From: Bigelowiella natans CCMP2755
Lineage: Eukaryota > Protista > Cercozoa
DNA length: 64,000 nucleotides
Direction of reading: 5' to 3'
Assembly: GCA_000320545.1 (NCBI GenBank)
Contig: ADNK01000501.1
Span: 62,001 to 126,000 of the forward strand
The position numbers and the translations under genes were made by a program. The notes beneath the pieces are model-generated. The model did not search any database, was not told the DNA's origin, and worked only from the letters and a program-made list of their open reading frames with translations. Positions 43,821 to 59,892 of the stretch are shown here, piece by piece (the stretch's first letter is position 1; the number at the start of each line of letters is the position of its first letter).

Positions 43821-44652
43821 CTGAGATGAAAGCTTTCGGAGAGGACTCCTGTCTCTCTGTCTGCAGCTTCTTCTCGTTTATATTTCTCTGTTTCCCCAGC
43901 CCGTTTGTCAGCTTGAATACTGACACCTACCCAGCAGAAAAGCCGTCAAATTGGTGGGTGCTGTTAGGCAAAATGGTTTTTCGAAAGCAGCAACGTCGAC
44001 GAAGAAGACATAACTAGGACTTCCCCACCCAGCTGCATTACCCTAGGACGAATTATTAGCTGCTGGTGGATCTACACACGCCTTTCGGAATATTTGGCGG
44101 GAAAGTGATCGTGTCGCTCTTGTGTCACTCCCGCTGACCGTGAAACATGTGCGGCTCTTAGTATGGCCGCGTATAGCACATGCAAAGATCTAGCAGCTAT
44201 CTGCGTGGAAAAAGGCGCTTTCAATCTTCCCCTTCCCCTCTCCTCCGTTATCCTACCCACCTGAAAATCGTCTCCAACGCCGCCACTGCAGTTGTCTGTG
44301 TGTTGGCGTCGTTGTTGTTGTTGTTGTTGTTGTTGTTTTGTTGTTGTTGTTAACCACGAAATCGGTCTTCCCACGGCTCCGTCGTATTCATAGTCTTCCA
44401 TAGACCAAATTTATATACTATAAATACCCTACATCATTTTTTAATATTATTTTCTTTGCAAAGTCGGAATCGTTGTTTTGAAGTTCTCTGCCTCTTTGCA
44501 TGTGATCATAGGATATATTATCGATTAAAATTTATTCCGTTGATTCTGTTCGGAAGAGCTTTGCTCTGAGCAATCCATCGGCAAGAGCTCTGACCTGCGA
44601 TGGCCCTTCTTTCCGATAACATTAACAGGTGGGCGCAGCTTTGAGGAGGAGA

Positions 44653-47600
44653 ATGCGAATAGGAAAATGGGAGAGGATGGAACGTGGCAGGAATGTTGAA
44701 GGTTCAATTATCCGTCTCGTGGCTATTTCCGCGTGTATCGCAGCTTTAGCTGCGATTCCACGCTCGGGGATACTCTCGAGCTCATCATCATTGCACCAAC
44801 GCGAGGCCTTCTACAATCACAACAGTCTTAAAAAGTATTATTCAAACTTTGCTCCACCTATAGAATGTTATATGTCGCTGCTGCGTCACAAAAACCCGTC
44901 ATACCTTCTTACCAGGAGATATGGATTTCGAACGAGTTGCTTCGGGTTAAGAGGAGGGGCCGAGGGAAGATTTTCTACAGCTGATAGTTTAAGCTTGGCA
45001 CGCCTTGGACTATCCGACTCTCCAATCATACCGCCTAATCTCCTTCGCGTAGATTACCACAATGAGACCACGTAAGCATGTCCCAAATAAAGGGGATGAA
45101 GTATTCACTCACCACAATGGCCATTTAGTGTACCTGTGTACATCAGGACAAATGGAAAAAGGGTCTCAATGAGAGACTTGTATTTAGCCCTCCTTGCTAA
45201 TATTGGCGGAGCGGTACCTACCTACATTTGCTGCCTATAGACGTCCAAAACAAAAAAAGATGGGGAGCAGGAGAGAAGCTCACTTCCAATTACCTACACG
45301 TCCTTCCACATAAATACACACGCCAGTGTGATCGTCAGATCTGAGACGAGAGCAGCTGATAATGGGTAATAAATTACGTTCAATCAGGGTCGATTGGAGG
45401 CTGAGCGAATGGTAACCAGCTGGCAAGCCAGAGCTGCACCTGGTAATGGAAATGCGTCCACCCTTTAACCACAGACATACCACATGTTGTTAATGAACAA
45501 TGCGGGCTCTGGCAAATAGGAAGAGAATATGCACTGATGTGATTGTATGCATTGATACCATTCAGGGTTTGTGCCTAGTTTGGTGAGCATTGTCACTGAG
45601 CCTACAGCTGATCCCCAGGTGGTAGTAGTAGTAGTAGTAATAAGTAGTTGCCAGTGAAAACTCAGATGCTCATGGATGCGTATCATTACCCAACGATTTT
45701 CTCAGGTCAGGCTGATGGCGGCCATAGTGGCGAAGAACGCAATCGGTACATCTCCTCCTCGTCGCTTGCAAATTACACGTTCCCATAGACTACATAAATA
45801 GTAGGCAGAAATTGCTGTTTGGGATGCGCACCATCCCAACTCAGACGCCGACTAGTTCCATATTGTTTATCATGCTTTTCCACTTCGTGTGAGTGCAAGT
45901 AATGTGATTTCTCCCTTCGGCTATGCTTGTCGACTGTGGCTCTCGCCACCATTCACTATCAGGAGGATTCTCGAGAGAGAGGCACGCAAACCCAGCATGC
46001 TGGCGGTACTACTGCTTATACGTAGCATCGAATGGTAGAAAAACGATCAGAAACGTATTCACACAGGCAGGCAACGTTCCCAACATTCATTGAGTGTATA
46101 AAACAATCGCTGAGATTGCTTCAAACCTAACGTGTCTGCACAGAGGGCTCACCATTCACGAGAAAGTGCGAGCGCGTCAAGCGCTTTTAGACTTGCTCTT
46201 TAAGGAGGAACATCCGGTGCATGATTCGTTAACATGAAAGCACACGCTGTAAGCCAAGAGTGGCGCCTCTCTCTCCATCCGATACTTGTTTTACTTCTCT
46301 CCTTATTTCGTGATTGGCCGAGTTAATGCTGTTACTACCGTTACTACCACTGAGAAACTATTCCATTTCCCTTCCTTCTACAGGCATTGTGCATGCAAGT
46401 GACCTTGTGTATCGCGTACATCTCCCATCACGATTACCCAAGATTGTGGCCAGGTGAGTCGTTACAAACAGACTAGTTGTAGTGTTGCTAAGAGCAGTCT
46501 TTGAGGAGGGTAGGAGGAGTAAAAATTCTGACTTTGTCGGACCACACGTACATTTGTCGTCACTCTAACAAAATCCTTCTTTCCCTCTTTCCCTCTTTCC
46601 GCCTTCAATACGCACAGACGCGGTAGATGATATTCTCGAGAAAGTCATGGTAACGCTTGTGTTGCAGTGATCAAAGATGATAGCAGCTGTAGTAGTTTAC
46701 GTACATTGCTGTCATACGATGCCTATATCTATTACTCGAAGCCCTTCCAAACCCCCTTACTACTACTACTACTACTACTACTACTTCACACACACAACAT
46801 AACCAGGTATCGCATAGCCAGTCCGACTTTCCAAGTATATGCAAGGCTTTGAAGTGTCTGAAGCACGTATGTCGGATGCACGGTAAGCTGCGTGCGTGGG
46901 GTCTAGTAGAAGGAAGGAGGGGACGGAGCGAAATAAATAGCTTACGCTCTCTTGATGCAACTTCCTCATCATCATCATCATTGTCGCATTATTATCATTA
47001 TTATTATTATTAGTAGTAGTAGTAGTATTATCATGATAACTATTCTAACCATCCTCTGTACCATTCACACATATTAGGTAGCGGGCCAGAGGGCACGAGT
47101 AGCAGCAGCCCGTCCGCGAGAGGTCGAATGGGCTCCGCCATGATGAAGATCGTGCAGAGGTAGTAGTAGTAGTAGTAGTAGTAGATGTTTTGTGGGGTAA
47201 TTTCGTTCTTGGGCTACTGTGGCTGCTGCTGAGCTTTGTATTACATGCACTTCCGTCCTTAGCGTTTTCCTCGTCATCTTAGTTTGCTCCTAGCCTTCAT
47301 CAATTCCATCTCCTCTTTACTCCGCTCTCTTCCCCCTCCTCCTCCTCCTCCTCCTCCTCCTCCTCCTCCCTTTCTTGTGCCGTTCGCCAGACTTATGGAC
47401 CCTGATGGTTTCAACTCTCGATCATCCCCTCGTTCCTCGTTGAAGATAGCAGCAGGAAAGGTGCTGGGAAAATGGAAGGAGAGAGGGGGAACGGGCCAAA
47501 CTCTTCTGATGCATTGGAATTTTTTTTGTGTTGTTGTTATGAATGAATGAAACCTTTCATCTTCTTTTACTGTTACTTGGGGTTGCATCGCTGTGTTTTC

Positions 47601-47834
47601 TTCGATTTCTGAATTTAGTCCTCGCTCGTCTCCCCCCCATTCCTTTTACTACAAACGGCATAGGTCCTGGATTTATGGAGGAAGTACTTGAAGATATTCT
47701 TAACAGGTGAGAGTCTCATTTAAATTGTCAGCATCATCATCGCAATGCGAAGTTGATTTCGGAATAGCGGGCAGCTGTGGATGTTCTTTTTTTTAGTTTT
47801 TTCGACCCATTAGTCGTTTTTCATATCATCATCA

Positions 47835-47868
<34 letters not shown>

Positions 47869-48180
47869 GATAATCGTGCTCAGATCAAAGTTCTGGCGAT
47901 TCCGTGGTCATGGCAGGAGTGATCGGAAATAAGGTGTAAGAGAGAAAGGAAAAGTATGAAGAGAGGAAGATGATGGAGAGTATGCGAAGACACGTCGTGT
48001 GGGCTCTCCTCGCTTTCCATTTCCCTTAAAAATATGTCGGAAACTACGAGTATGATGATGACGATGATGATGATGATGAAAATGGTAAACCATTTTATTA
48101 CATACAGTGTTTAAGCGTCTTGAGGGACATGCTGCTGATGCAAGAGGCATCAAGTACGCGATGATCACAACTAGCAGCAA

Positions 48181-48212
<32 letters not shown>

Positions 48213-51200
48213 AGACCAAGGTGGTAGAGAGTACATGCATACTATTATGTATCTTCTTTCCCTCCTGCACAAGTATTTTTCGTACATTTCGACGGCAAGT
48301 CTATTCCCACACGATGTAAGTATTTGAGATTTTCATCTCTGCCCTCTTCCGCATCCTCCTCCTCCTCGTCGTTGTTTTCTCCCTCGTTGTTATTTTATTA
48401 TCCATCCTCACACTTCTGATGGTTCTGGATTAGACCTGATCGAGCCTCTCCAACCGTTGATCGCTGAATTCATACGCGACAGCCAGCAAGTTATGATCAA
48501 GATTGTCCAGGTAGTATCTCCTTGAATAGGTGAATGATGATGATGATGATGATGACGATGATGATGATAGTGATGATGATGATCATCTGACTAGCGTATT
48601 CCTCTTGGCTATTGCTGCTGCTGTTGCTACACAGACGGGCCTGATCTCGTCTTCTCATCAGAATGTCGTGGGAGACTCTACCTCTTCATCCTCCCAAATC
48701 ATTACAGAAACAGCCCTCAAAGTTGTCATTTCATATCTATCCGAGATCATCTCGCAATTCCCTCCTTACGTCCTTTCCCATGATTCGAATCATCGTCACT
48801 ATCAACACGATCATGATATTCACATCATCTTTATCGCCATAATCGTCATTATGTATGATTCTGCAGCAATACGAGCGGATATTATCGGTACTGGTGCTGA
48901 TCCTGGAGACAAATCCCGTCGAGTTTTCCGACCACCTGAAGCAGGTATATGATATGAAATAGGCTCTTTACTCCTTTGATCTTTGCCTCTTGGCAGTCGC
49001 GTTGTAGTTTTTCACATACAACCATATTTCTCATGCTCCTCTTTCTTCCAATTATTGACGACGCTGATACAAGTTATTGTACACAGACTTTGGAGATAGT
49101 CTTGACGGCATTGTATCAGGACAGCACAAACGGCCACACCATGCGGTTCTACTACTGCTACTACTACTACTGCTGTTGCTGCTGCTGCTGCTGATGCTTT
49201 CTTCCTCCTCCGCTTCATTCTCTTCATCATCTTCTCATTTTCGCCTTTCCCCCATCCCTCTTCTTATCCAGATGGAAAACACGTAAGATGATGTTCCAAT
49301 TCGTGAGAGACGTGATCGGTTCCAGGATGTACTCGGAGCAGGTATTACCAGCTTTAAGCACACATTCACACGCACATCTACCACCACTGCTTTTATGTCA
49401 TTCTGTCTCCTCTCAAATCAACCTACTAGTAGTGAATTCGATGTTTTTGGTTCTTCCCTTCTTGCCTTCTGGCGCTTGTGTCTACTTGTTCTCCTCTTAT
49501 CCAGATTGCCAACGTATACCAACAACGATATCTTCGGGTACTCCTATGTTCTAGTGCTTTTCCTTCAGTTGCTGCTGCTGCTGCTACTTACTGCTGCTAC
49601 ATAATGAAGTTCATCTTCCCACCTTATATTTTAAACGCATGTTTTTGTGGGGCCAAAACTCTTCGAATACATTTCATACAACATTTGCTGCGTGATGAGC
49701 CAGCCTGACTTGTGAAGTAATCCTGGTGTATTTATCCTTTTGCAACACAGCTTTCAGCCGAATTGAAACAGCACAGTGAGGGCGGGGAAATGGGAATGAG
49801 GTGATGATGACGTATCACGAGCCACCCACTTTTCTGTACGATTCGAAACATTCTAGATTTGATTGGTGCCTTCCGAGCAAGATTTTTTCCGTCGAAAAGT
49901 ATCGTCTTCATCCCGTACTTTAAAACCCCATTTAAGCGTATATTTCCTATGGTTTTCTTCTCCACAGCATCGACCCCGAAGCCTTGCAGGAAGCACGGGC
50001 TGAACTTGGTGACTCTATTCATCATCCATCTATTCGATGACAATGCCACTTCTTTACATCCGAGTACTTATATACTTATACCTCTTCTTCCTCCCCCTCC
50101 TCCTCCCAACTCTTTCTTCCATCTTTGTAGAACACCTGCAACGAGGGGCTAGGCTTCGGAAGCAAGGAGCCGATGTGATCAAGGAAATGCTTGGTAACAA
50201 GATCGAGTGTCGTTGTTGTTATTGTTGTTATTATTATTGTTGTTGTATTGAGCAAGATGACGATGACGAAGCGACTGTGCTATTCCTCCTTGTTGCTTTC
50301 CTCATGACTCACGTGCGTGTGTGTGTGTGTGTACGGTTGCTCACCGTTAGGCCCAGAGGACGACATTCGGGTTGCTGATGATGATGAGGAGGAGGAGGAG
50401 ATTGAACCTGCAGGAGTAGTAGATCCCTCACCTCAGCTGCAGAAAATCATCGAGGTGCTGCACAGATCTATGTGGCAGGGGGGTTGGAAGATACAGCTAA
50501 ACAAAAAGGAGAGATAGACGGACTAGAAGGGAGAAATTCTTCTTTGTCTCTCACAAGCCTAGCATCTTTCTCAATTCCTCTCCACCTTCTTCGGCCTATT
50601 ATTTTGCAGGCAACCATTGTGAAGTATATTTCCCTTTCGGGGGAAGAATTACAAGACTGGAAAGCTGACCCCGAGGTTTATTTTTTAAGCTATTTGCTGC
50701 CGCTGTTATTGTTAGTGTCGCTCTGATGATGAAAACTCTATCACTACTGGCCAATGATCTACTATTAGTAATATTGTTGTCTGTTCTCTCTCCCCCCCTC
50801 TGCCTCTGCAACAAAACCAACAAATAGCTTTATCTCGCGAGTGCCGGACGGGATGCACCGAGGCCTGAGGAGGAAGGGCCAAGGTAGCAGTATTGATTTG
50901 GGGGGGGAGGCGAGATTGAAAGGGGAACATCGTTGCTGTTGCCGTTGCCGCTGGCGCTGGCGCTGCTGTTAATTCTTGTTGTTTTTGTTTTTCCCTGACG
51001 AGACACAACCTTGATGTCCACCGACATTTAACACACACACACACACACACGCACACAATATTTGTTTATAGGGGCCTTGGTCACGGGCTAATTCGCCAAT
51101 TATTCCTGAGGTAGTAGTAGTAGTAGTAGTAAAGTAGATGTAGTGGTAGTAAATGTCGTAAAAATATGGAGAGAACAGAAGCAGGAGCTGCGACTATTTG

Positions 51201-51408
51201 AAAACAATTGATTTCAGAAGAAGCAGCAACTTGTTCGTTTGACGCAACTAAATACCCGTTACCATCAATACCATTAGAGCTCCTAGGAACACAGCGACTG
51301 CCGTAAGCATCCATTATATAAACATGCCTGTGCTGTAGCAGCAGAAACCAAGAACAAAGCAAGAACGACGATATCACTCACCTTCTCCTATCCACAATCT
51401 CCCCCCCC

Positions 51409-51503
<95 letters not shown>

Positions 51504-51876
51504 TTCCTCTCTCCTCCCTTCTGCGCAGATACATGCTGCATTTTCAAAGTTACAAGATCTTCCCGATAAAGGTGGTTGCGATTTGTGCATTGATAAAGAA
51601 GAACCAAATCATTAACGAAGCTCGCGTGCGCGCGCGCACACACACACACATAAACACACACACAAACACAAAAACACAGATCTATACAATACTTTTACAC
51701 TTGTCCATTATGATTTGAGGCAATGTTGCGTGGTTGTCAGGGCAACCTGCAGGAGTGCTATACCTGGAAGCAGTCTATCGGTAAGAAGAGAATATTGCTT
51801 TCACAGCATGGAAGGAAGAACCCAGAACATATTCAATTCTGACCTGTTATGATAATGCTGATCTCATACCTACTCC

Positions 51877-51918
<42 letters not shown>

Positions 51919-53755
51919 TCCCTCTACTCTGCCTGTCGTTTTCTCTCCGAGCAGAGTCATTGCAGATCTATACGATGAGCGTGAGCTGTACACACGACTC
52001 CCTGCTGATGAGCTGTATCGAAGTGCGCTCCGTCCTCTTTTCCTTCCCCAAAATGAAGCAGTGGGGAACAGCAACAGCAACTTCTTCGTGGGGGAGGCTA
52101 AACAACTAGCAAAGTCGTAGCAGTGCCGTAACGCTGTAGTGTTAGTAATAGTAGTAGTAGTAGCAGTAATGATAATGGCAGTGGTGGAGAAGGAGATTTG
52201 AAGTTTGTAGAATCATCTGTTGTAAGTCTTTACTTTCCTCCAGCTGCTTAACATCATCATCATCATCATCATCATCATCATTATCATCATCGTCATTTGC
52301 TACTGCTATCTTAGTATTGTTCTTCGAACACGAGCGACGGCTGTGCTTGGAACCATCAGTAAGAGGTATTTTCTCTCCTCCTCCTCCTCCTTCTCCGCCT
52401 CCTCCTCCTCCATCTCCTCCTCCTGCTTTTCACGTTTTCCGGTGTTATACTGTTCTTGACTGATTGTGTATTGAAGAGAAGATGATGATGATGCTCAGCC
52501 CTAAAGTGCGTTCTTTGTCATGCGTTGTTGTTGTTGTTATTGTTGCATATGTTGTTTGGAAAGATTGGGAGACGCCGCGTTTATAGAAGCCTACCATCTA
52601 TTGACCTCGCAGCTGGGGGGGGGAGGGGAAGGAGCTGCTAATGGTGGTGATGGTCCCGAGGACACAGTGCTTTCTCTCACCACTGGTATATCGAGAAGGC
52701 TTTTCTCTCTCTCCCTCCCTCTCCCTCTCTATACCTCTCTTAATTTTTTTTATCGTGTCGTCAATTTTTGTCAGTTGAGGGACTGATATCTATGGTCCGG
52801 CACATTCTCAACCTAAGACGGCGCATGAAGCACACCATCGAGGCTTGTAAGGATCGAATCGGAATGCAGCAGCAGCAACAGCAGCAAAATCAACAACAAC
52901 AAAGTGTCGTCAGTTCTGACCTCGACAATCCCTTCGGTATTGTAATAAAATTTAACATTGTATGCACACACACAGAGAGAGAGAGAGAGACAAACTCGCA
53001 AAGAGAGAGGGGGGAGAGGGGACGAAACGAGAGAATAAGAATTGATAATTGTAGAAGCATCACGTGTTCTGTATTATCGTCACTCCTATTGTCATCGGCA
53101 CTGTTATTATTTTCTCCATTTTAATTGTGAACATTTCCCTCCCTCCCCTCAATATGGCAGGGCTCACGGAAGAGGACCTGTAATCCTTATACAACATCTC
53201 AATTCGAACAACTACCACCACCTACCATCATCACGATTATCATAAACCTTATAAACATCATCATCATCATCATCATCATCAAAAACAACAACAACAACGC
53301 TCACATTTCCCTGCTACGATTAGAGTGGATTCCTCTATATTCACTACTACCATGTACATGCTCTTGCCTGTAATACGCAGCTTGCTGCAGCGAAGTTTGA
53401 ACGATCTGACACAGGCTGTAGCTCAATCAATCGACAAAGTAAGGAGAAAAGTATAACAGATTGGACATCAGCAAAACACACGCATTATATGCAGTGCCAA
53501 CAATGAGCAACACGAGCATTGTTTTCTTCTTATAATAGAAGCTCTTATTGAGGTATAAAGATGATGATGGTGATGACGATGATGGCAACAATAGTGATGG
53601 TTCTGAGAGAAGAAGGCGGATGCTGATATTAAAACAACAACAGACACTCGCTCGGTGCTTTCAGTCTCTTGAGAGCCTTCAGGTGAAGTTAATAATATTG
53701 CAGATTTCCTCTTTGAAAAACTGATCATTAATCCAGATGTGACACAAGAAACTCA

Positions 53756-53793
<38 letters not shown>

Positions 53794-53889
53794 CCCTTCG
53801 CGCTTAGGAGCCATACGGGATCGCTACCATTCTTGACTTTGTGTCACTCATCATTGACCTGCTGGAGGACAAAGTGGACAATCATATTG

Positions 53890-53928
<39 letters not shown>

Positions 53929-55742
53929 GAGCCTACATGCTGCCTCGATGTTCATATCATCGGGAATGGGGATATTGATGATTGTCTATCTGACCATGAG
54001 CACGTATGAAAACAAATTCTAAGTATATGATGATGACCATCGCAGATATTTGCCACCGCAGTCCCCAAAGCCTGGATGTCTGCAAGTACTACTTTCATCA
54101 TCATAATCATCATCGTAATCATCATCATCGTCGTCATCATCATCCTCCTCCTCCTCATCATCATCATCACTAGCTTACCATTTCCAGCTGCTTGACTCTT
54201 ATATCGTGTTCTTCTACCTAACAGGACAACGTGCTGAAAAGGCCACGCGTAATGCAATTGCTTTTACCTCCTCCTCCTCCTCCCCCTCCTTCTTCTCTTC
54301 CTCCTCCCCCTTCCATCTACATTTCTAAAGCTCCTTTATTTCTCTCTCTCTCTCTCTCTCTCTCCCCCCCCCCCCCCCCTTAAATTTACATACAAAATTT
54401 TTAGTATTTTAACCGGGTTTGTTACTATTATTATCATGATTATTATTCGCAGGTGATAATACAGGGTTGGCAGGAATTGGGCTGACACGGTAGTATTATT
54501 ATCATTATTATTATTATTAGTAGTAGTAGTAGTAGTAGTAGTCATACTGAGATCTATGTATCAACTTCATTAAGTAGCTGTCATATGATTTCGATATCAT
54601 CATCCCAATGAAGTGCTTTGTATGCGGTGGTTGTGGTGGTACGTGCCCCCACCCCTTTTCCCATAACGTTATATTCTCCTTCGTCAGGGTCTACGGAGCG
54701 CTGATTACCTTGCTCTCCCACCTCGTTGCTCGGATGGGGTGAGGAGCCCTCAATAAACTCACGCTCGCAAAAAAAAAACAACGAACAACCTAATGCAATT
54801 ACCTCGATGCATCTAATACTACCGTGATCATCTTTTCACCCATTTGTTGTCGAATGACAATGCTGTTCTCTATTAATATCTTCTTATGATTGAAAGGCCG
54901 GCAGCATTAGATAATGAGCAGGTAGCAAAATTGATAGCCGTGTTGTCGTTGTCGTTGTTATTCTGGTTGATGTTGGACATACGATTTTTTGGAAAATAAC
55001 TTACCCCAAAAACACCAGGCATCATGTTTCAATGGTTTTGTTGTAAGTTGTCGTCATGTTTCCTCCTTGAATTTTTGTGCATAGTTTTGTTATATAAATC
55101 TATGTAAATGTGTATGCGTGTGTGTTTGCCGCTGTGTGCATTCACATTTGCATGTATCAAAGTATCGTAAACACATGCATTTCATTTATCATGTTTTGTC
55201 CTTGTTGCAGCTACGTCCCGTCTTGCTGTCGTTACTCGGTAGTACAATTCAATGAGTGTTGGTTCTATCACGCCGCTGCTGCTGCTGATGATGATGATGA
55301 TGATAATGCTCATTTTCATGTCGCCAATTCACAATCCCCTGCCTCTTCAAGGCAACTTCGGTTAGCAAATAGTTTCTCTGCCGCAACAAGTAATTACACC
55401 AGTAGAATGATGTGATTTTGTGCTGTGGTCGTCGTCGTCATCCGTGAAACACGATGATCGATCATCAGGACATGTGCTCTCGGCGAAGCAGGAGGACGAC
55501 TCTGAGATGCAGTACATACTAGGTATACTACCAAGATGATGAGGGCGGGGAGGTGGGTGGGTGGAAGAAGGGTGTAGCAAGAACATTAGGACGATGATAG
55601 GTTTATGATTGTGGCTGCTGCTTCTCTCCCCCCCCCCTCCTCTACCTACCGCTGCAGATGATGCGTTTGCGCTCTTTGAGACGATGCAGCTGGCTATTGG
55701 TTAGTAGTAATAGTATTGGTAGTAGTTTTGGAAAGACACACG

Positions 55743-55795
<53 letters not shown>

Positions 55796-55912
55796 AGTTT
55801 TACGTTTCCACATTGGTATCGTTGGGAGTAGAGAAGATGATATAGCGACGTTACTTTATGCTGCTCATTATATACATACATATATATTCTAAGCTATTCA
55901 TCCATCAACCCT

Positions 55913-55943
<31 letters not shown>

Positions 55944-56963
55944 TTCAGGTGAGAGAGCCTCTGTTGAGCTGACTCCTCTCCTACAGCACGTGGTGTTGAG
56001 AATCAATCCAGAGAGGTACTACTAGCGGCGATCCTGTACGATATGTTCTTCATCTCTACAACTACAACAAAAGTGCCACTATCTGCAGCATTACCTTGCC
56101 CTACTGATTTGGCTATGATGATGCTCCTCAACCCTCTCCAAAGGGATGGGATAGCACCTTCCTAGTGTATACTACTATCTTGTTCCTTTTGTTCTCCTTG
56201 ACCCTTCTTCTTCTTCTTCTTCTTCTTCTTCTTCTTCTTCGACTATTCAGTCCAAGTGGGCTTGGGATAGTTGATGGCTATCTGGTGCACCGAAGGTGGG
56301 TTTTGTTCAGAGATGTGAGCTGCTGCAAAAAGCCAGTAGAAGTAGAGAAGTAGCAGAGGAATTGTAAGTGGAAGAGGAGGAAGAGAAGAAGAAGTCTACG
56401 AATATCTCTCTCCCCTCTGCTCTCTCTCTCCCTCTCTTTCTGTGCACAGCGACTTCATCACGAATCCCTTGTCGTTCTGATTTAAGCGTCGTTTTTAACA
56501 ACTTGGCTCAGGTACGACCTTATAGAAGGTTTCCTTCCGCAGATCATACCCATCCTAAGATACTCCACGTTTGAGCTCCGTGACCGCCTGGTAGAAGAGA
56601 AAGAAGAAAAAAGATGAGAGGAGGAGGAGGGAGAAAAGAGAAAAAGCTAATCAACACAATATGCAGTGTTTGTAGTCTTGAGAAAATACAACTTTCATTT
56701 GAGCTCTTCGATTTCATCACCGCAGCAAACACGCCTATTATAACGAAGAAGAAGCAATAAACAAATACACGCCGTAGGTCGCCCCTCCTCCACGCGCCTC
56801 TACCGAATCTAAAAAGGGTGATGGCACTCGGGGTAAAGGCAAGGATGATCCCGAGGCAATGGACAAAGAGGAAGAGAGACCTCCAAGGTGACGTCATAGT
56901 AGTGTAGTACACTGCGATGATGATGATGATGATGATGATGCTGTTTCTCCATTACTGCTACCT

Positions 56964-56996
<33 letters not shown>

Positions 56997-57656
56997 ACTA
57001 CTACCACCACCACTTCCACAACAAACATCGTTTATCAGATCATGATGATCATCATAACCACTACCATCCACCCAGCTACTACTACTACAAGTACAACTAC
57101 AACTAGCACATAATCCCCCCCTAAATAATCGGGTAGAGGCCTGTCGTCCATGAGCGTGAGGGAGATGGTGACTGTCTGTTCCGTCCTTGCGAATTTGATT
57201 CCTTTGCTGCCAGGTGCTAGTATTTCATAATAACATCAGCATGATCCTGATGATAGCGACATTCATTTTACCACATAGAAGAGGCTGTTTTGGTGCTTTT
57301 CTCTCCCTCCCGCACCCCCTTGACTCCTTTGTCTTTGGTAATTCTGAGTAGAGTCTGCCTGGGCGCCTTACGAGATAGAAGGTGTAACTTACTATGAAGT
57401 ATAGAGATCTATGGTGGGAGGAGGAAGAGGAAGTGGTAGAGGGGATTGAATTAATAATCGTATATTAGGCTGCTCTGCCAAGTGCAATGAGGGCGTGTCT
57501 TTTGTTATGTGCTGATTCTCTTCTTGTATTATTTCTATACGATTAGAACTTCTAAGAGCTATGGCCCAGCTGGCTTCTGCACTGTCAAACGTGCAGCACA
57601 GACTCGTAATTTTGAGTGCAGCAGTCATGATGAAGGAGCGTGTAGTTTATCATTGT

Positions 57657-57688
<32 letters not shown>

Positions 57689-57896
57689 CACAAAGCATAC
57701 AGCCACGTATGCGGGGACATGAATGCGCTGATGATACACAAGGATATTTAAATATATAATGTGCGTGTAACCAGGTCGCTCCTCTGCAAACGGCACTGCT
57801 CCTAGTTCTCTCTCGAGCCATCTATACTCGACCAAATCTCATCAACAAACTCAACCCTCGGCAGAAACCAAACCCCCAAACAGCAGAAGTAACGAC

Positions 57897-57931
<35 letters not shown>

Positions 57932-58614
57932 TGATGCTTTAATCCATGGTCTTAACGTCGTTGTCGGCGTCGTTAATCTGCTACTGCATCATCGTCGCAC
58001 CGTTTATTAGTTCCTTGCAGCAGGCAAACGTGTTTGTTCTTCATTATTCTTGTCGAAAACATTGTTGCGTTCTTGCCCCATCATCGTCATTACCATCATC
58101 ATCATCATCATCATCATTATCATCATCATCATCATCATCACCACCACCATTATTCGCTTTCACGCCTATGACTAAATCGATGCTGCTACTCTCACATCGT
58201 GCTCAGCTAATAGCAACCCTCTCCAACCTTGCTGCACGTGTCGGCTTCGATGAGCTCCTCGGGAACATCTTCTCCAATGCTTTCCGGAGAGCGGTAGGAG
58301 GAGTAGAAGTAGCAGTTGTAGAAGTAATAGCTGGCAAACTAGAGGTCTTACTAGAGGAGGGAAAGGACAACGAGAACCTCACGTTTGCAGTACAATTAAG
58401 CCCTCGTAGGAAGGCCTCAGGGGGAGGAAACGTGATTCATGAACATCATCTTCGGCCTGTGTTATCATTCAGGTGAACGGTGGAGGGGGGGGGCACCGTG
58501 GGTTAGATTCAGTCAAAACTAGTCGAGAAAAGCGCCACGTGGTATTCATGGCTATCGCATCTGCCGTTTGCAAAGGTGCGATAAGTAACAGTAGTTGTTG
58601 ATTATCATCATCAC

Positions 58615-58647
<33 letters not shown>

Positions 58648-59179
58648 ACGACAGTAGCATAGTGTTGTTGTTATTCTTTCTCTGTATGATGAGCGCTGTG
58701 AATAGGTGCGTGGAATCTTAAGGAAAGCAGATTCATAGAGCAACGTCAGGCTGTGAAAGCGCTTCTGAGCCTAGGAATACGGGTTGATGATGATGTTAAA
58801 CGATGATGCTCTCTGTTCCCCCCCCCTCTTCCTTGTGCATGATGTGCAATAGCATTGAATGGCTGTGCTCTTTTTAGGTCGTACATGAGGAATCGCAATT
58901 CCGTAAGGTACGGCGTCACATATCACACAACATCGTTCAAATTCAATTTACTCTCGTATTCTAGCACAGCTACGACGCTATCATTGTTGTTCGGAAATTC
59001 CAAAGTTGGCCCCACCCTCACCAACACCTTCTTCTGTGTACATCATCATGGTATTTGTAGGACCTGGACGCGCTGGCCGGGGTAGCAGGAGATGAACGTA
59101 AGATATATAATCCACCACGCCAGCAGCGCATCATTTGAATACTATCCCGGAACCACAAGGCGGTGGAACAGAATGAATT

Positions 59180-59215
<36 letters not shown>

Positions 59216-59892
59216 GTGGTAGTGAGAAGGAAGGAGGAGGAGGAGGAGGAGGAGGAGGAGGACAACAGCGATGCTGCTTTATCTGCTGCTGTTCTCAAAC
59301 TCCATGCTGCTTTTTCACATTATAACATCTAACACCCTCCTCCTCAGGCCCAGGCGACAGCAGCAGCAGTAGCGTAAACGGAGCAGTAGCGGTCACTTCT
59401 TCCTCCCCAGCCTCAACAGCTCTATCTTCTCCATCCACAGCAATGAGAGTGGTGGCCGGTGACACTCTGTATCGACAGCTAAAACGACATACACTGACGC
59501 TGATAATGACGACGACGACGACGACGACTGTACCAGGGACCTATGGAGGTGATGAGCTGGTGAATGGGGCTGCTGGGCCATTGCTGTCTCAATTAGCAAA
59601 ACATCTCCTCAGTAACTTAGGCTGGAGCGAAACCCAAGCCTGCGACATGCTGGGATGGTCGGGCACTCGAAGAGAGCAGCAACTCGCTCGTATCCTTCGA
59701 GGAGAGGACCTCTCCAAAAAAACAGCGTCGCCGCATACGACATCCTCCGCGTCGTTCTTTGGTATGGGCGACAGCGATGATGCGAGCGCTGTTGATGTAG
59801 GCGGCCACCCTGCAGCGCATCCCTTGTTCTCTATGCTTGGTGGTGGACTCACGCCAATGGTGTTTCGACCCTCTGGGGGATTCTTTCCCTAG
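44653..59892 (+). CDS. IPO11: Importin-beta family karyopherin (importin-11/Kap120-like) with a ~150-aa N-terminal bipartite leader; dozens of exons
   Basis: Phase-checked splicing (45071/45147, 45213/45388, 45442/45566) gives an IBN_N-type region LYLALLANIGGAGRLEAERMVTSWQARAAPGFVPSLVSIVTEPTADPQVRLMAAIVAKNAIG, then EKVRARQALLDLLFKEEHPALCMQVTLCIAYISHHDYPRLWP and later KYISLSGEELQDWKADPE. HEAT-like exons continue to the stop at 59892. Central and 3' exons are only partly resolved. Confidence 0.8.

Follow-up and report, generated by a model that had tools for sequence, protein, structure and literature searches.

A leader-bearing importin-11-family gene of Bigelowiella natans as a candidate for nucleomorph nuclear import

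Introduction

Host-made proteins of chlorarachniophytes are carried to the plastid or to the periplastid compartment by signal plus transit-like peptides (PMC3542566). Among the proteins retained for the nucleomorph are Rae1 and an algal Nup98 that bears a signal and FG repeats, and these two were the only components found when the nucleomorph pore was studied, in a work that did not survey the transport receptors (PMC6411479). Nucleomorphs are without a canonical pore complex, and the entry of GFP fusions larger than 40 kDa was read as the sign of a possibly passive pore (PMC6411479); a 2021 review named the organisation of this pore as an open question (PMC8421043). Suzuki 2016 predicted 147 nucleomorph and 134 periplastid proteins (PMC5635652). 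No discussion of chlorarachniophyte nucleomorph karyopherins was found in the literature searched, and such proteins may sit unremarked in the prediction lists of Curtis 2012 and Suzuki 2016.

Here we describe a gene from a stretch of 64,000 nucleotides of the Bigelowiella natans CCMP2755 genome (contig ADNK01000501.1, positions 62,001 to 126,000, hereafter the window), whose product is predicted to be an importin-11-type karyopherin preceded by a leader. Cryptophyte nucleomorphs encode importin alpha and beta, CRM1 and Ran, which the window protein resembles as a soluble nuclear-transport factor that would serve a nucleomorph; the cryptophyte factors, however, stay in the red-algal nucleomorph genome, whereas the window gene is host-encoded, its product would be reimported and it is of the importin-11 type. 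The periplastid and nucleomorph class to which such a product would belong is said to have comprised 1002 predicted proteins in the study of Curtis in 2012.

From its sequence the window gene looks like a member of this known class of nucleus-encoded periplastid and nucleomorph proteins. It shares with the targeted POLD, POLH, RFC1, RPA1, H2A/H2B, EFL, Nup98 and Rae1 the signal plus transit-like leader, a nuclear or cytosolic function, a separate leaderless host copy and a probable algal origin (PMC5635652, PMC6411479, PMC3542566), its own localisation being a predicted one. With importin-11, KAP120 and plant KA120, the last being a karyopherin-beta subfamily (PMC3083441), it has in common the IBN_N region, the D-Y-P-x-x-W motif, the acidic W-x-x-D-P-E motif and a HEAT body of about 1000 amino acids. 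It differs from these proteins in a 147-residue bipartite leader, a C-terminal extension, a long branch and a two-residue insertion before PGF, and it is a member of a second importin-11 subfamily, outside the canonical green and the host IPO11 clades.

Materials and methods

The exon 1-exon 2 junction was called on the genomic sequence and the rest of the gene by spliced alignment to an importin-11 profile; the joined model is a local analysis, and the databases were queried exon by exon. The parts of the leader were called by hydropathy and residue composition, and chance was assessed with 3000 dinucleotide shuffles of positions 44200-45071. A 13-residue motif of the window protein was back-translated into a degenerate pattern and run against metagenomes; since the relatives obtained in this way had been selected by the motif, the motif was removed from the tree tests. 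The importin-11 assignment was also checked by a tree with CSE1 outgroups, and the B. natans assembly (91.4 Mb, 3736 contigs), whose proteins match the JGI Bigna1 models, was searched for IBN_N and Xpo1 domains. For the expression of the junction, the destination of the protein, its cleavage site, Ran-dependent transport and the cargo we give what we infer, while the anatomy, the family, the separate host paralogue, the subfamily placement and the parallel genes were read from the sequences.

Gene structure and family identity

The gene is spread over about 56 exons on the plus strand (44653-59892; Table 1), of which 53 were identical under a second profile; the boundaries of the middle and C-terminal exons are uncertain. 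The preliminary description of this DNA had ended the gene at 46460, which is far too short, as the stop codon lies more than 13 kb downstream. At the 5' end nine successive GT-AG introns yield a 309-codon model free of stops. The N-terminal domain carries the motifs WQARAAPGF, RLMAAIVAKNAIG and D-Y-P-x-x-W, and a conserved acidic ELQDWKADPE exon was located at 50610-50675.

The joined model aligned to positions 22-855 of the IPO11 profile with 219 bits, 754 profile columns having good posterior, and the spliced model corresponds to a mature protein of about 1080 residues, in agreement with a HEAT solenoid of about 1000 amino acids. The IBN_N region was recognised in the same alignment, and the closest relative, a metagenome protein of 41% identity (L044), matches PF03810 at 46.5 bits. 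Single exons searched in Pfam gave no match, since they are too short, and the C-terminal extension, which runs roughly 120-170 amino acids past the profile, had no Pfam match either. The best 40 phmmer matches in our IPO11-heavy local set were all of the IPO11 type, with none of CSE1, TNPO3 or IPO4. A genome search with PF25758 (TPR_IPO11) found only the host copy; the exons of the window gene are very short, and a member of the same subfamily (L030) also misses this domain model. The earlier identification as an importin-11-like karyopherin is borne out by the profile alignment, the phmmer matches and the tree, by which the predicted protein is a nucleus-encoded member of the importin-11/KAP120 family.

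Table 1. Parts of the window importin-11 gene (window coordinates) and other B. natans karyopherin genes with LRGG-ending extensions
Feature	Location	Strand	Remarks
AT-rich upstream stretch, probable promoter and 5' UTR	44400..44652	.	promoter role inferred
Start ATG and charged n-region, aa 1-18	44653..44706	+	further in-frame ATG at 44677
h-region of signal-like peptide, aa 19-35	44707..44757	+	Kyte-Doolittle 11-residue maximum 2.7
Basic Ser/aromatic-rich transit-peptide-like segment, aa 36-102	44758..44958	+	LRGG codons 44947-44958
Post-LRGG linker, neutral charge to Met148; exon 1 ends	44959..45071	+	
Intron 1, 75 nt, GT-AG, phase 2, in-frame stops	45072..45146	+	from genomic sequence
Exons 2-8, Met148 (45169) and importin N-terminal domain	45147..46453	+	41% identity over 122 aa to metagenome relative L044
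About 45 short exons, HEAT-repeat body	46618..59097	+	spliced-alignment model; some boundaries uncertain
Last exon(s), C-terminal extension	59348..59892	+	stop TAG 59890-59892; exact structure uncertain
Importin-4-like gene, Bigna1|142119, near-intronless, leader to RLRGG	C1218 (L020:2268-6332)	minus	
IPO4/5-like gene, extension to LRGG	C2405 (L059)		
Importin-beta1, extension to LRGG	C2720 (L060)		
CSE1, extension to LRGG	C2909 (L061)		

The exon 1 leader

Exon 1 (44653-45071) is an open frame of 139 codons from its ATG, and intron 1 (AC|gtaagc...catcag|G), with a donor near consensus, fuses it in frame to exon 2, so that 147 residues precede Met148. Its hydrophobic stretch reaches a best 11-residue Kyte-Doolittle mean of 2.7, against 1.4 for the N-terminus of the host IPO11, and the following residues 36-102 hold 10 K/R, 2 D/E and 13 S/T, with LRGG at 99-102. 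The layout proposed before, in which a signal-like hydrophobic stretch is followed by a basic, Ser-rich segment up to LRGG, a linker and an in-phase splice onto the importin, is confirmed in the genomic sequence; the term acid-poor fits up to LRGG but not the linker (residues 103-147), where 5 D/E accompany 5 K/R. As judged by hydropathy and composition, the window importin-11 carries the signal plus transit-like leader predicted for periplastid-targeted proteins. LRGG was not found in the plastid leaders of the LHC proteins examined, a small control.

Such an arrangement is far beyond chance: an in-phase ATG frame of at least 100 amino acids arose in 6 of the 3000 shuffles, one with an h-region as well in a single shuffle, and one with [LIV]RGG in addition in none. 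Attribution of exon 1 to an upstream gene was ruled out, since the neighbouring APC1 gene lies on the opposite strand and exon 1 cannot be its tail. Two other phase-2 donors were noted inside exon 1, at 44733 and 44835, and use of the latter would give a shorter leader which keeps the h-region and loses LRGG.

The host copy and the origin of the gene

A separate leaderless host importin-11 (Bigna1|88418, on the minus strand of contig C2314) was recovered by the PF25758 genome search, as the preliminary description had proposed to look for. Its protein starts with the importin domain itself, an in-frame stop lies upstream, and the gene is transcribed, as its transcript contig (L047) shows. The host nucleus does not need the window gene, given this copy, and the leaderless isoform previously suggested to start at Met148 found no support and becomes unnecessary.

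The degenerate pattern matched 20 metagenome contigs (L026-L045), 19 of which score against the importin-11 profile, the remaining one being cut by the contig end. These contigs have 53-71% GC and bear introns, and some of them were sampled from Antarctic rock and at a mine site. Their proteins form a second importin-11 subfamily with the motifs AAPGF and AKNAVGSSWRK, distinct from the canonical green IPO11, and no description of it was found. The grouping of the window protein with this subfamily, with the motif removed, received 100/99 on 704 columns, and again 100/99 on 483 columns when the profile was also free of the subfamily. Short N-terminal alignments lacking the motif gave 89/91 on 163 columns and no resolution on 98 columns (mid-exons out of frame). 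The two-residue insertion before PGF is present in the window protein and in all nine informative rows of the subfamily, and in none of the 26 other rows.

The host importin-11 and a foraminiferan copy form one clade (100/99), and the window protein, a long branch of 1.6-1.9, does not fall into this rhizarian orthogroup of B. natans host and foraminiferan copies. A clade of the window protein with the host copy was rejected (p-AU 1e-5 and 0.0004), and the AU tests ruled out that the window gene arose from the host IPO11 by recent duplication. The 100/99 trees, the shared insertion and the rejected host clade together place the predicted protein in the second importin-11 subfamily.

Whether this subfamily is green was approached separately. 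The AU test rejected a tree in which the window protein joins the canonical green IPO11 and the second subfamily stays outside; a common clade of the second subfamily and the canonical green IPO11 received 68/88 and, with a p-AU of 0.15, is neither supported nor rejected. An intron-containing PGK gene adjoins one of the second-subfamily genes, and its closest match is PDB 7zy7, the chloroplast PGK of Chlamydomonas; sequences like the subfamily are presumably present in chlorophytes, which serves as a lead. The habitats, the PGK neighbour and this lead suggest that the subfamily is probably chlorophyte, and that the window importin-11 was probably transferred from the green-algal endosymbiont. 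As to the earlier proposal that the W..xAAPGF and AKNAxG motifs resemble green-algal homologues, the motifs do mark the subfamily of the window protein and set it apart from the host and foraminiferan copies, and the green-algal identity is a probable one; the phylogeny separated the protein from the rhizarian copies. The best PDB match of the subfamily is KAP120 (importin-11/KAP120 entry 6fvb). Alignment-based searches, one swamped by plant IPO11 and the other made with a degenerate profile, retrieved no chlorarachniophyte orthologue of the window importin-11.

Other leader-bearing karyopherins

At least four further karyopherin genes of B. natans have N-terminal extensions ending in LRGG; they encode importin-beta1, CSE1 and two importin-4/5-like proteins (Table 1). 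Three of them show a clear h-region, and the 5' exon of the CSE1 gene is ambiguous. The Amorphochlora orthologue of the gene on C1218 (GAB5364178.1) has kept the signal-like stretch, the basic segment and an RLWGG, and there the leader is present on a transcript contig. Leaderless CSE1, TNPO3-like, XPO1, IPO7/8-like and IPO11 genes are found in the same genome, and no LRGG was seen upstream of the importin-beta1-like and transportin-like copies.

The two IPO7/8-like genes (C3733 and C3288; L011, L012) are leaderless and near-identical and lie at the ends of their contigs, which may reflect a duplication in the assembly. An Xpo1-domain gene on C3181 (L062), exportin-T-like by reading, has an ambiguous 5' end and no leader was established for it. 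At least three loci with the importin-alpha C-terminal domain (Arm_3; C2655, C1243, C3401) and two with a RanBP1 domain (C3276, C3257) were also noted.

Discussion

We propose that the window gene encodes an endosymbiont-derived importin-11 which is imported by its bipartite leader into the periplastid compartment and serves the nucleomorph, a reading we hold on balance to be probable; targeting to the periplastid compartment, whatever the role there, is more likely still. The endosymbiont importin-11 gene would have moved to the host nucleus and acquired, in the form of an added first exon, its bipartite leader. The protein would then enter the ER of the host by means of its signal peptide and the periplastid compartment, the cytoplasm of the endosymbiont, by means of the transit-like part; there the leader would be removed, possibly after the ubiquitin-like LRGG. 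Mature importin-11 would bind cargo and take it across a pore lined with the FG protein Nup98, and so into the nucleomorph, as one of a second karyopherin set (with importin-beta1, CSE1 and the two importin-4/5-like proteins) that parallels the host set. Binding of RanGTP, cargo and FG nucleoporins is putative, by analogy with the family. Import into the periplastid compartment is the expected route, since a karyopherin would have its partners there and not in the plastid. The original proposal of a nucleomorph import receptor is in this way supported by the leaderless paralogue, the subfamily placement, the other leader-bearing karyopherins and the fact that B. natans, as a chlorarachniophyte, does possess a green-algal nucleomorph, the destination still being a predicted one.

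The strongest competing explanation agrees on the periplastid compartment but supposes that the pore is leaky and passive and that the protein, without being a Ran-driven transporter, mainly acts as a chaperone of basic cargo prone to aggregation (ribosomal proteins, histones). Importins are chaperones of basic proteins, and the window protein is highly divergent, both of which would suit such a role, as would a nucleomorph that has no canonical pore complex and admits large GFP fusions (PMC6411479). We nevertheless regard it as unlikely, since the FG-bearing Nup98 has been retained and since a leader-bearing CSE1, the protein that re-exports importin-alpha, occurs beside importin-beta1, a pair that suggests a genuine cycle of import.

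It is improbable that exon 1 is unused or only partly used and that translation from Met148 gives the host cytosol a second importin-11, one of algal descent. The homologues do begin where Met148 lies, exon 1 contains two alternative phase-2 donors and the junction comes from genomic sequence only; but the rarity of an in-phase frame with an h-region among the shuffles, the near-consensus donor, the same type of leader on four other karyopherins and the presence of a host IPO11 all speak for a leader that is translated. Still less probable is retention of the protein at the outer membranes of the plastid or within the endomembranes of the host, by a signal anchor or an ER/secretory signal: the n-region of 18 residues is long, but bona fide LHC leaders of B. 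natans have n-regions of similar length, the window importin-11 has no ER-retention tail, and we know of no karyopherin function in the ER lumen. A new role outside the nucleus, with the protein targeted to the stroma of the plastid, is the least credible. The likeness of plastid and periplastid leaders and the basic character of the first 67 residues past the h-region would allow it, but the LHC leaders examined had no LRGG, a whole set of nuclear-transport factors bears such leaders and the stroma, to our knowledge, has neither Ran nor FG partners.

A lone leader-bearing importin would be an expected kind of gene, and the weight of the argument rests on the set, which suggests that the nucleomorph still uses active, receptor-driven transport. 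Several retargeted and imported receptors of 100 kDa are hard to reconcile with a passive nucleomorph pore, so that our reading of the window importin-11 runs against the published suggestion (PMC6411479). We can go further only tentatively, to a near-complete, host-encoded and reimported kit (importin-beta1, CSE1, two importin-4/5-like proteins, importin-11 and NTF2) which might drive selective Ran-dependent traffic through a pore of little beyond Nup98 and Rae1; this is possible, and if it is true, no natural selective gate to a nucleus would be simpler, and this one would be under the control of the host. The leader-bearing karyopherins would show a route for host control of an endosymbiont nucleus, and their genes provide handles for testing the selectivity of the pore in the transformable Amorphochlora.

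Neighbouring and other loci

Upstream of the importin gene the window holds APC1 (PF20518; 38567-42461, minus strand), a single open frame of 1096 codons transcribed away from the importin. On another contig (C2228, locus L089) a chlorophyll a/b-binding domain was observed in an open frame of 820 codons, behind apparent RNA-recognition motifs.
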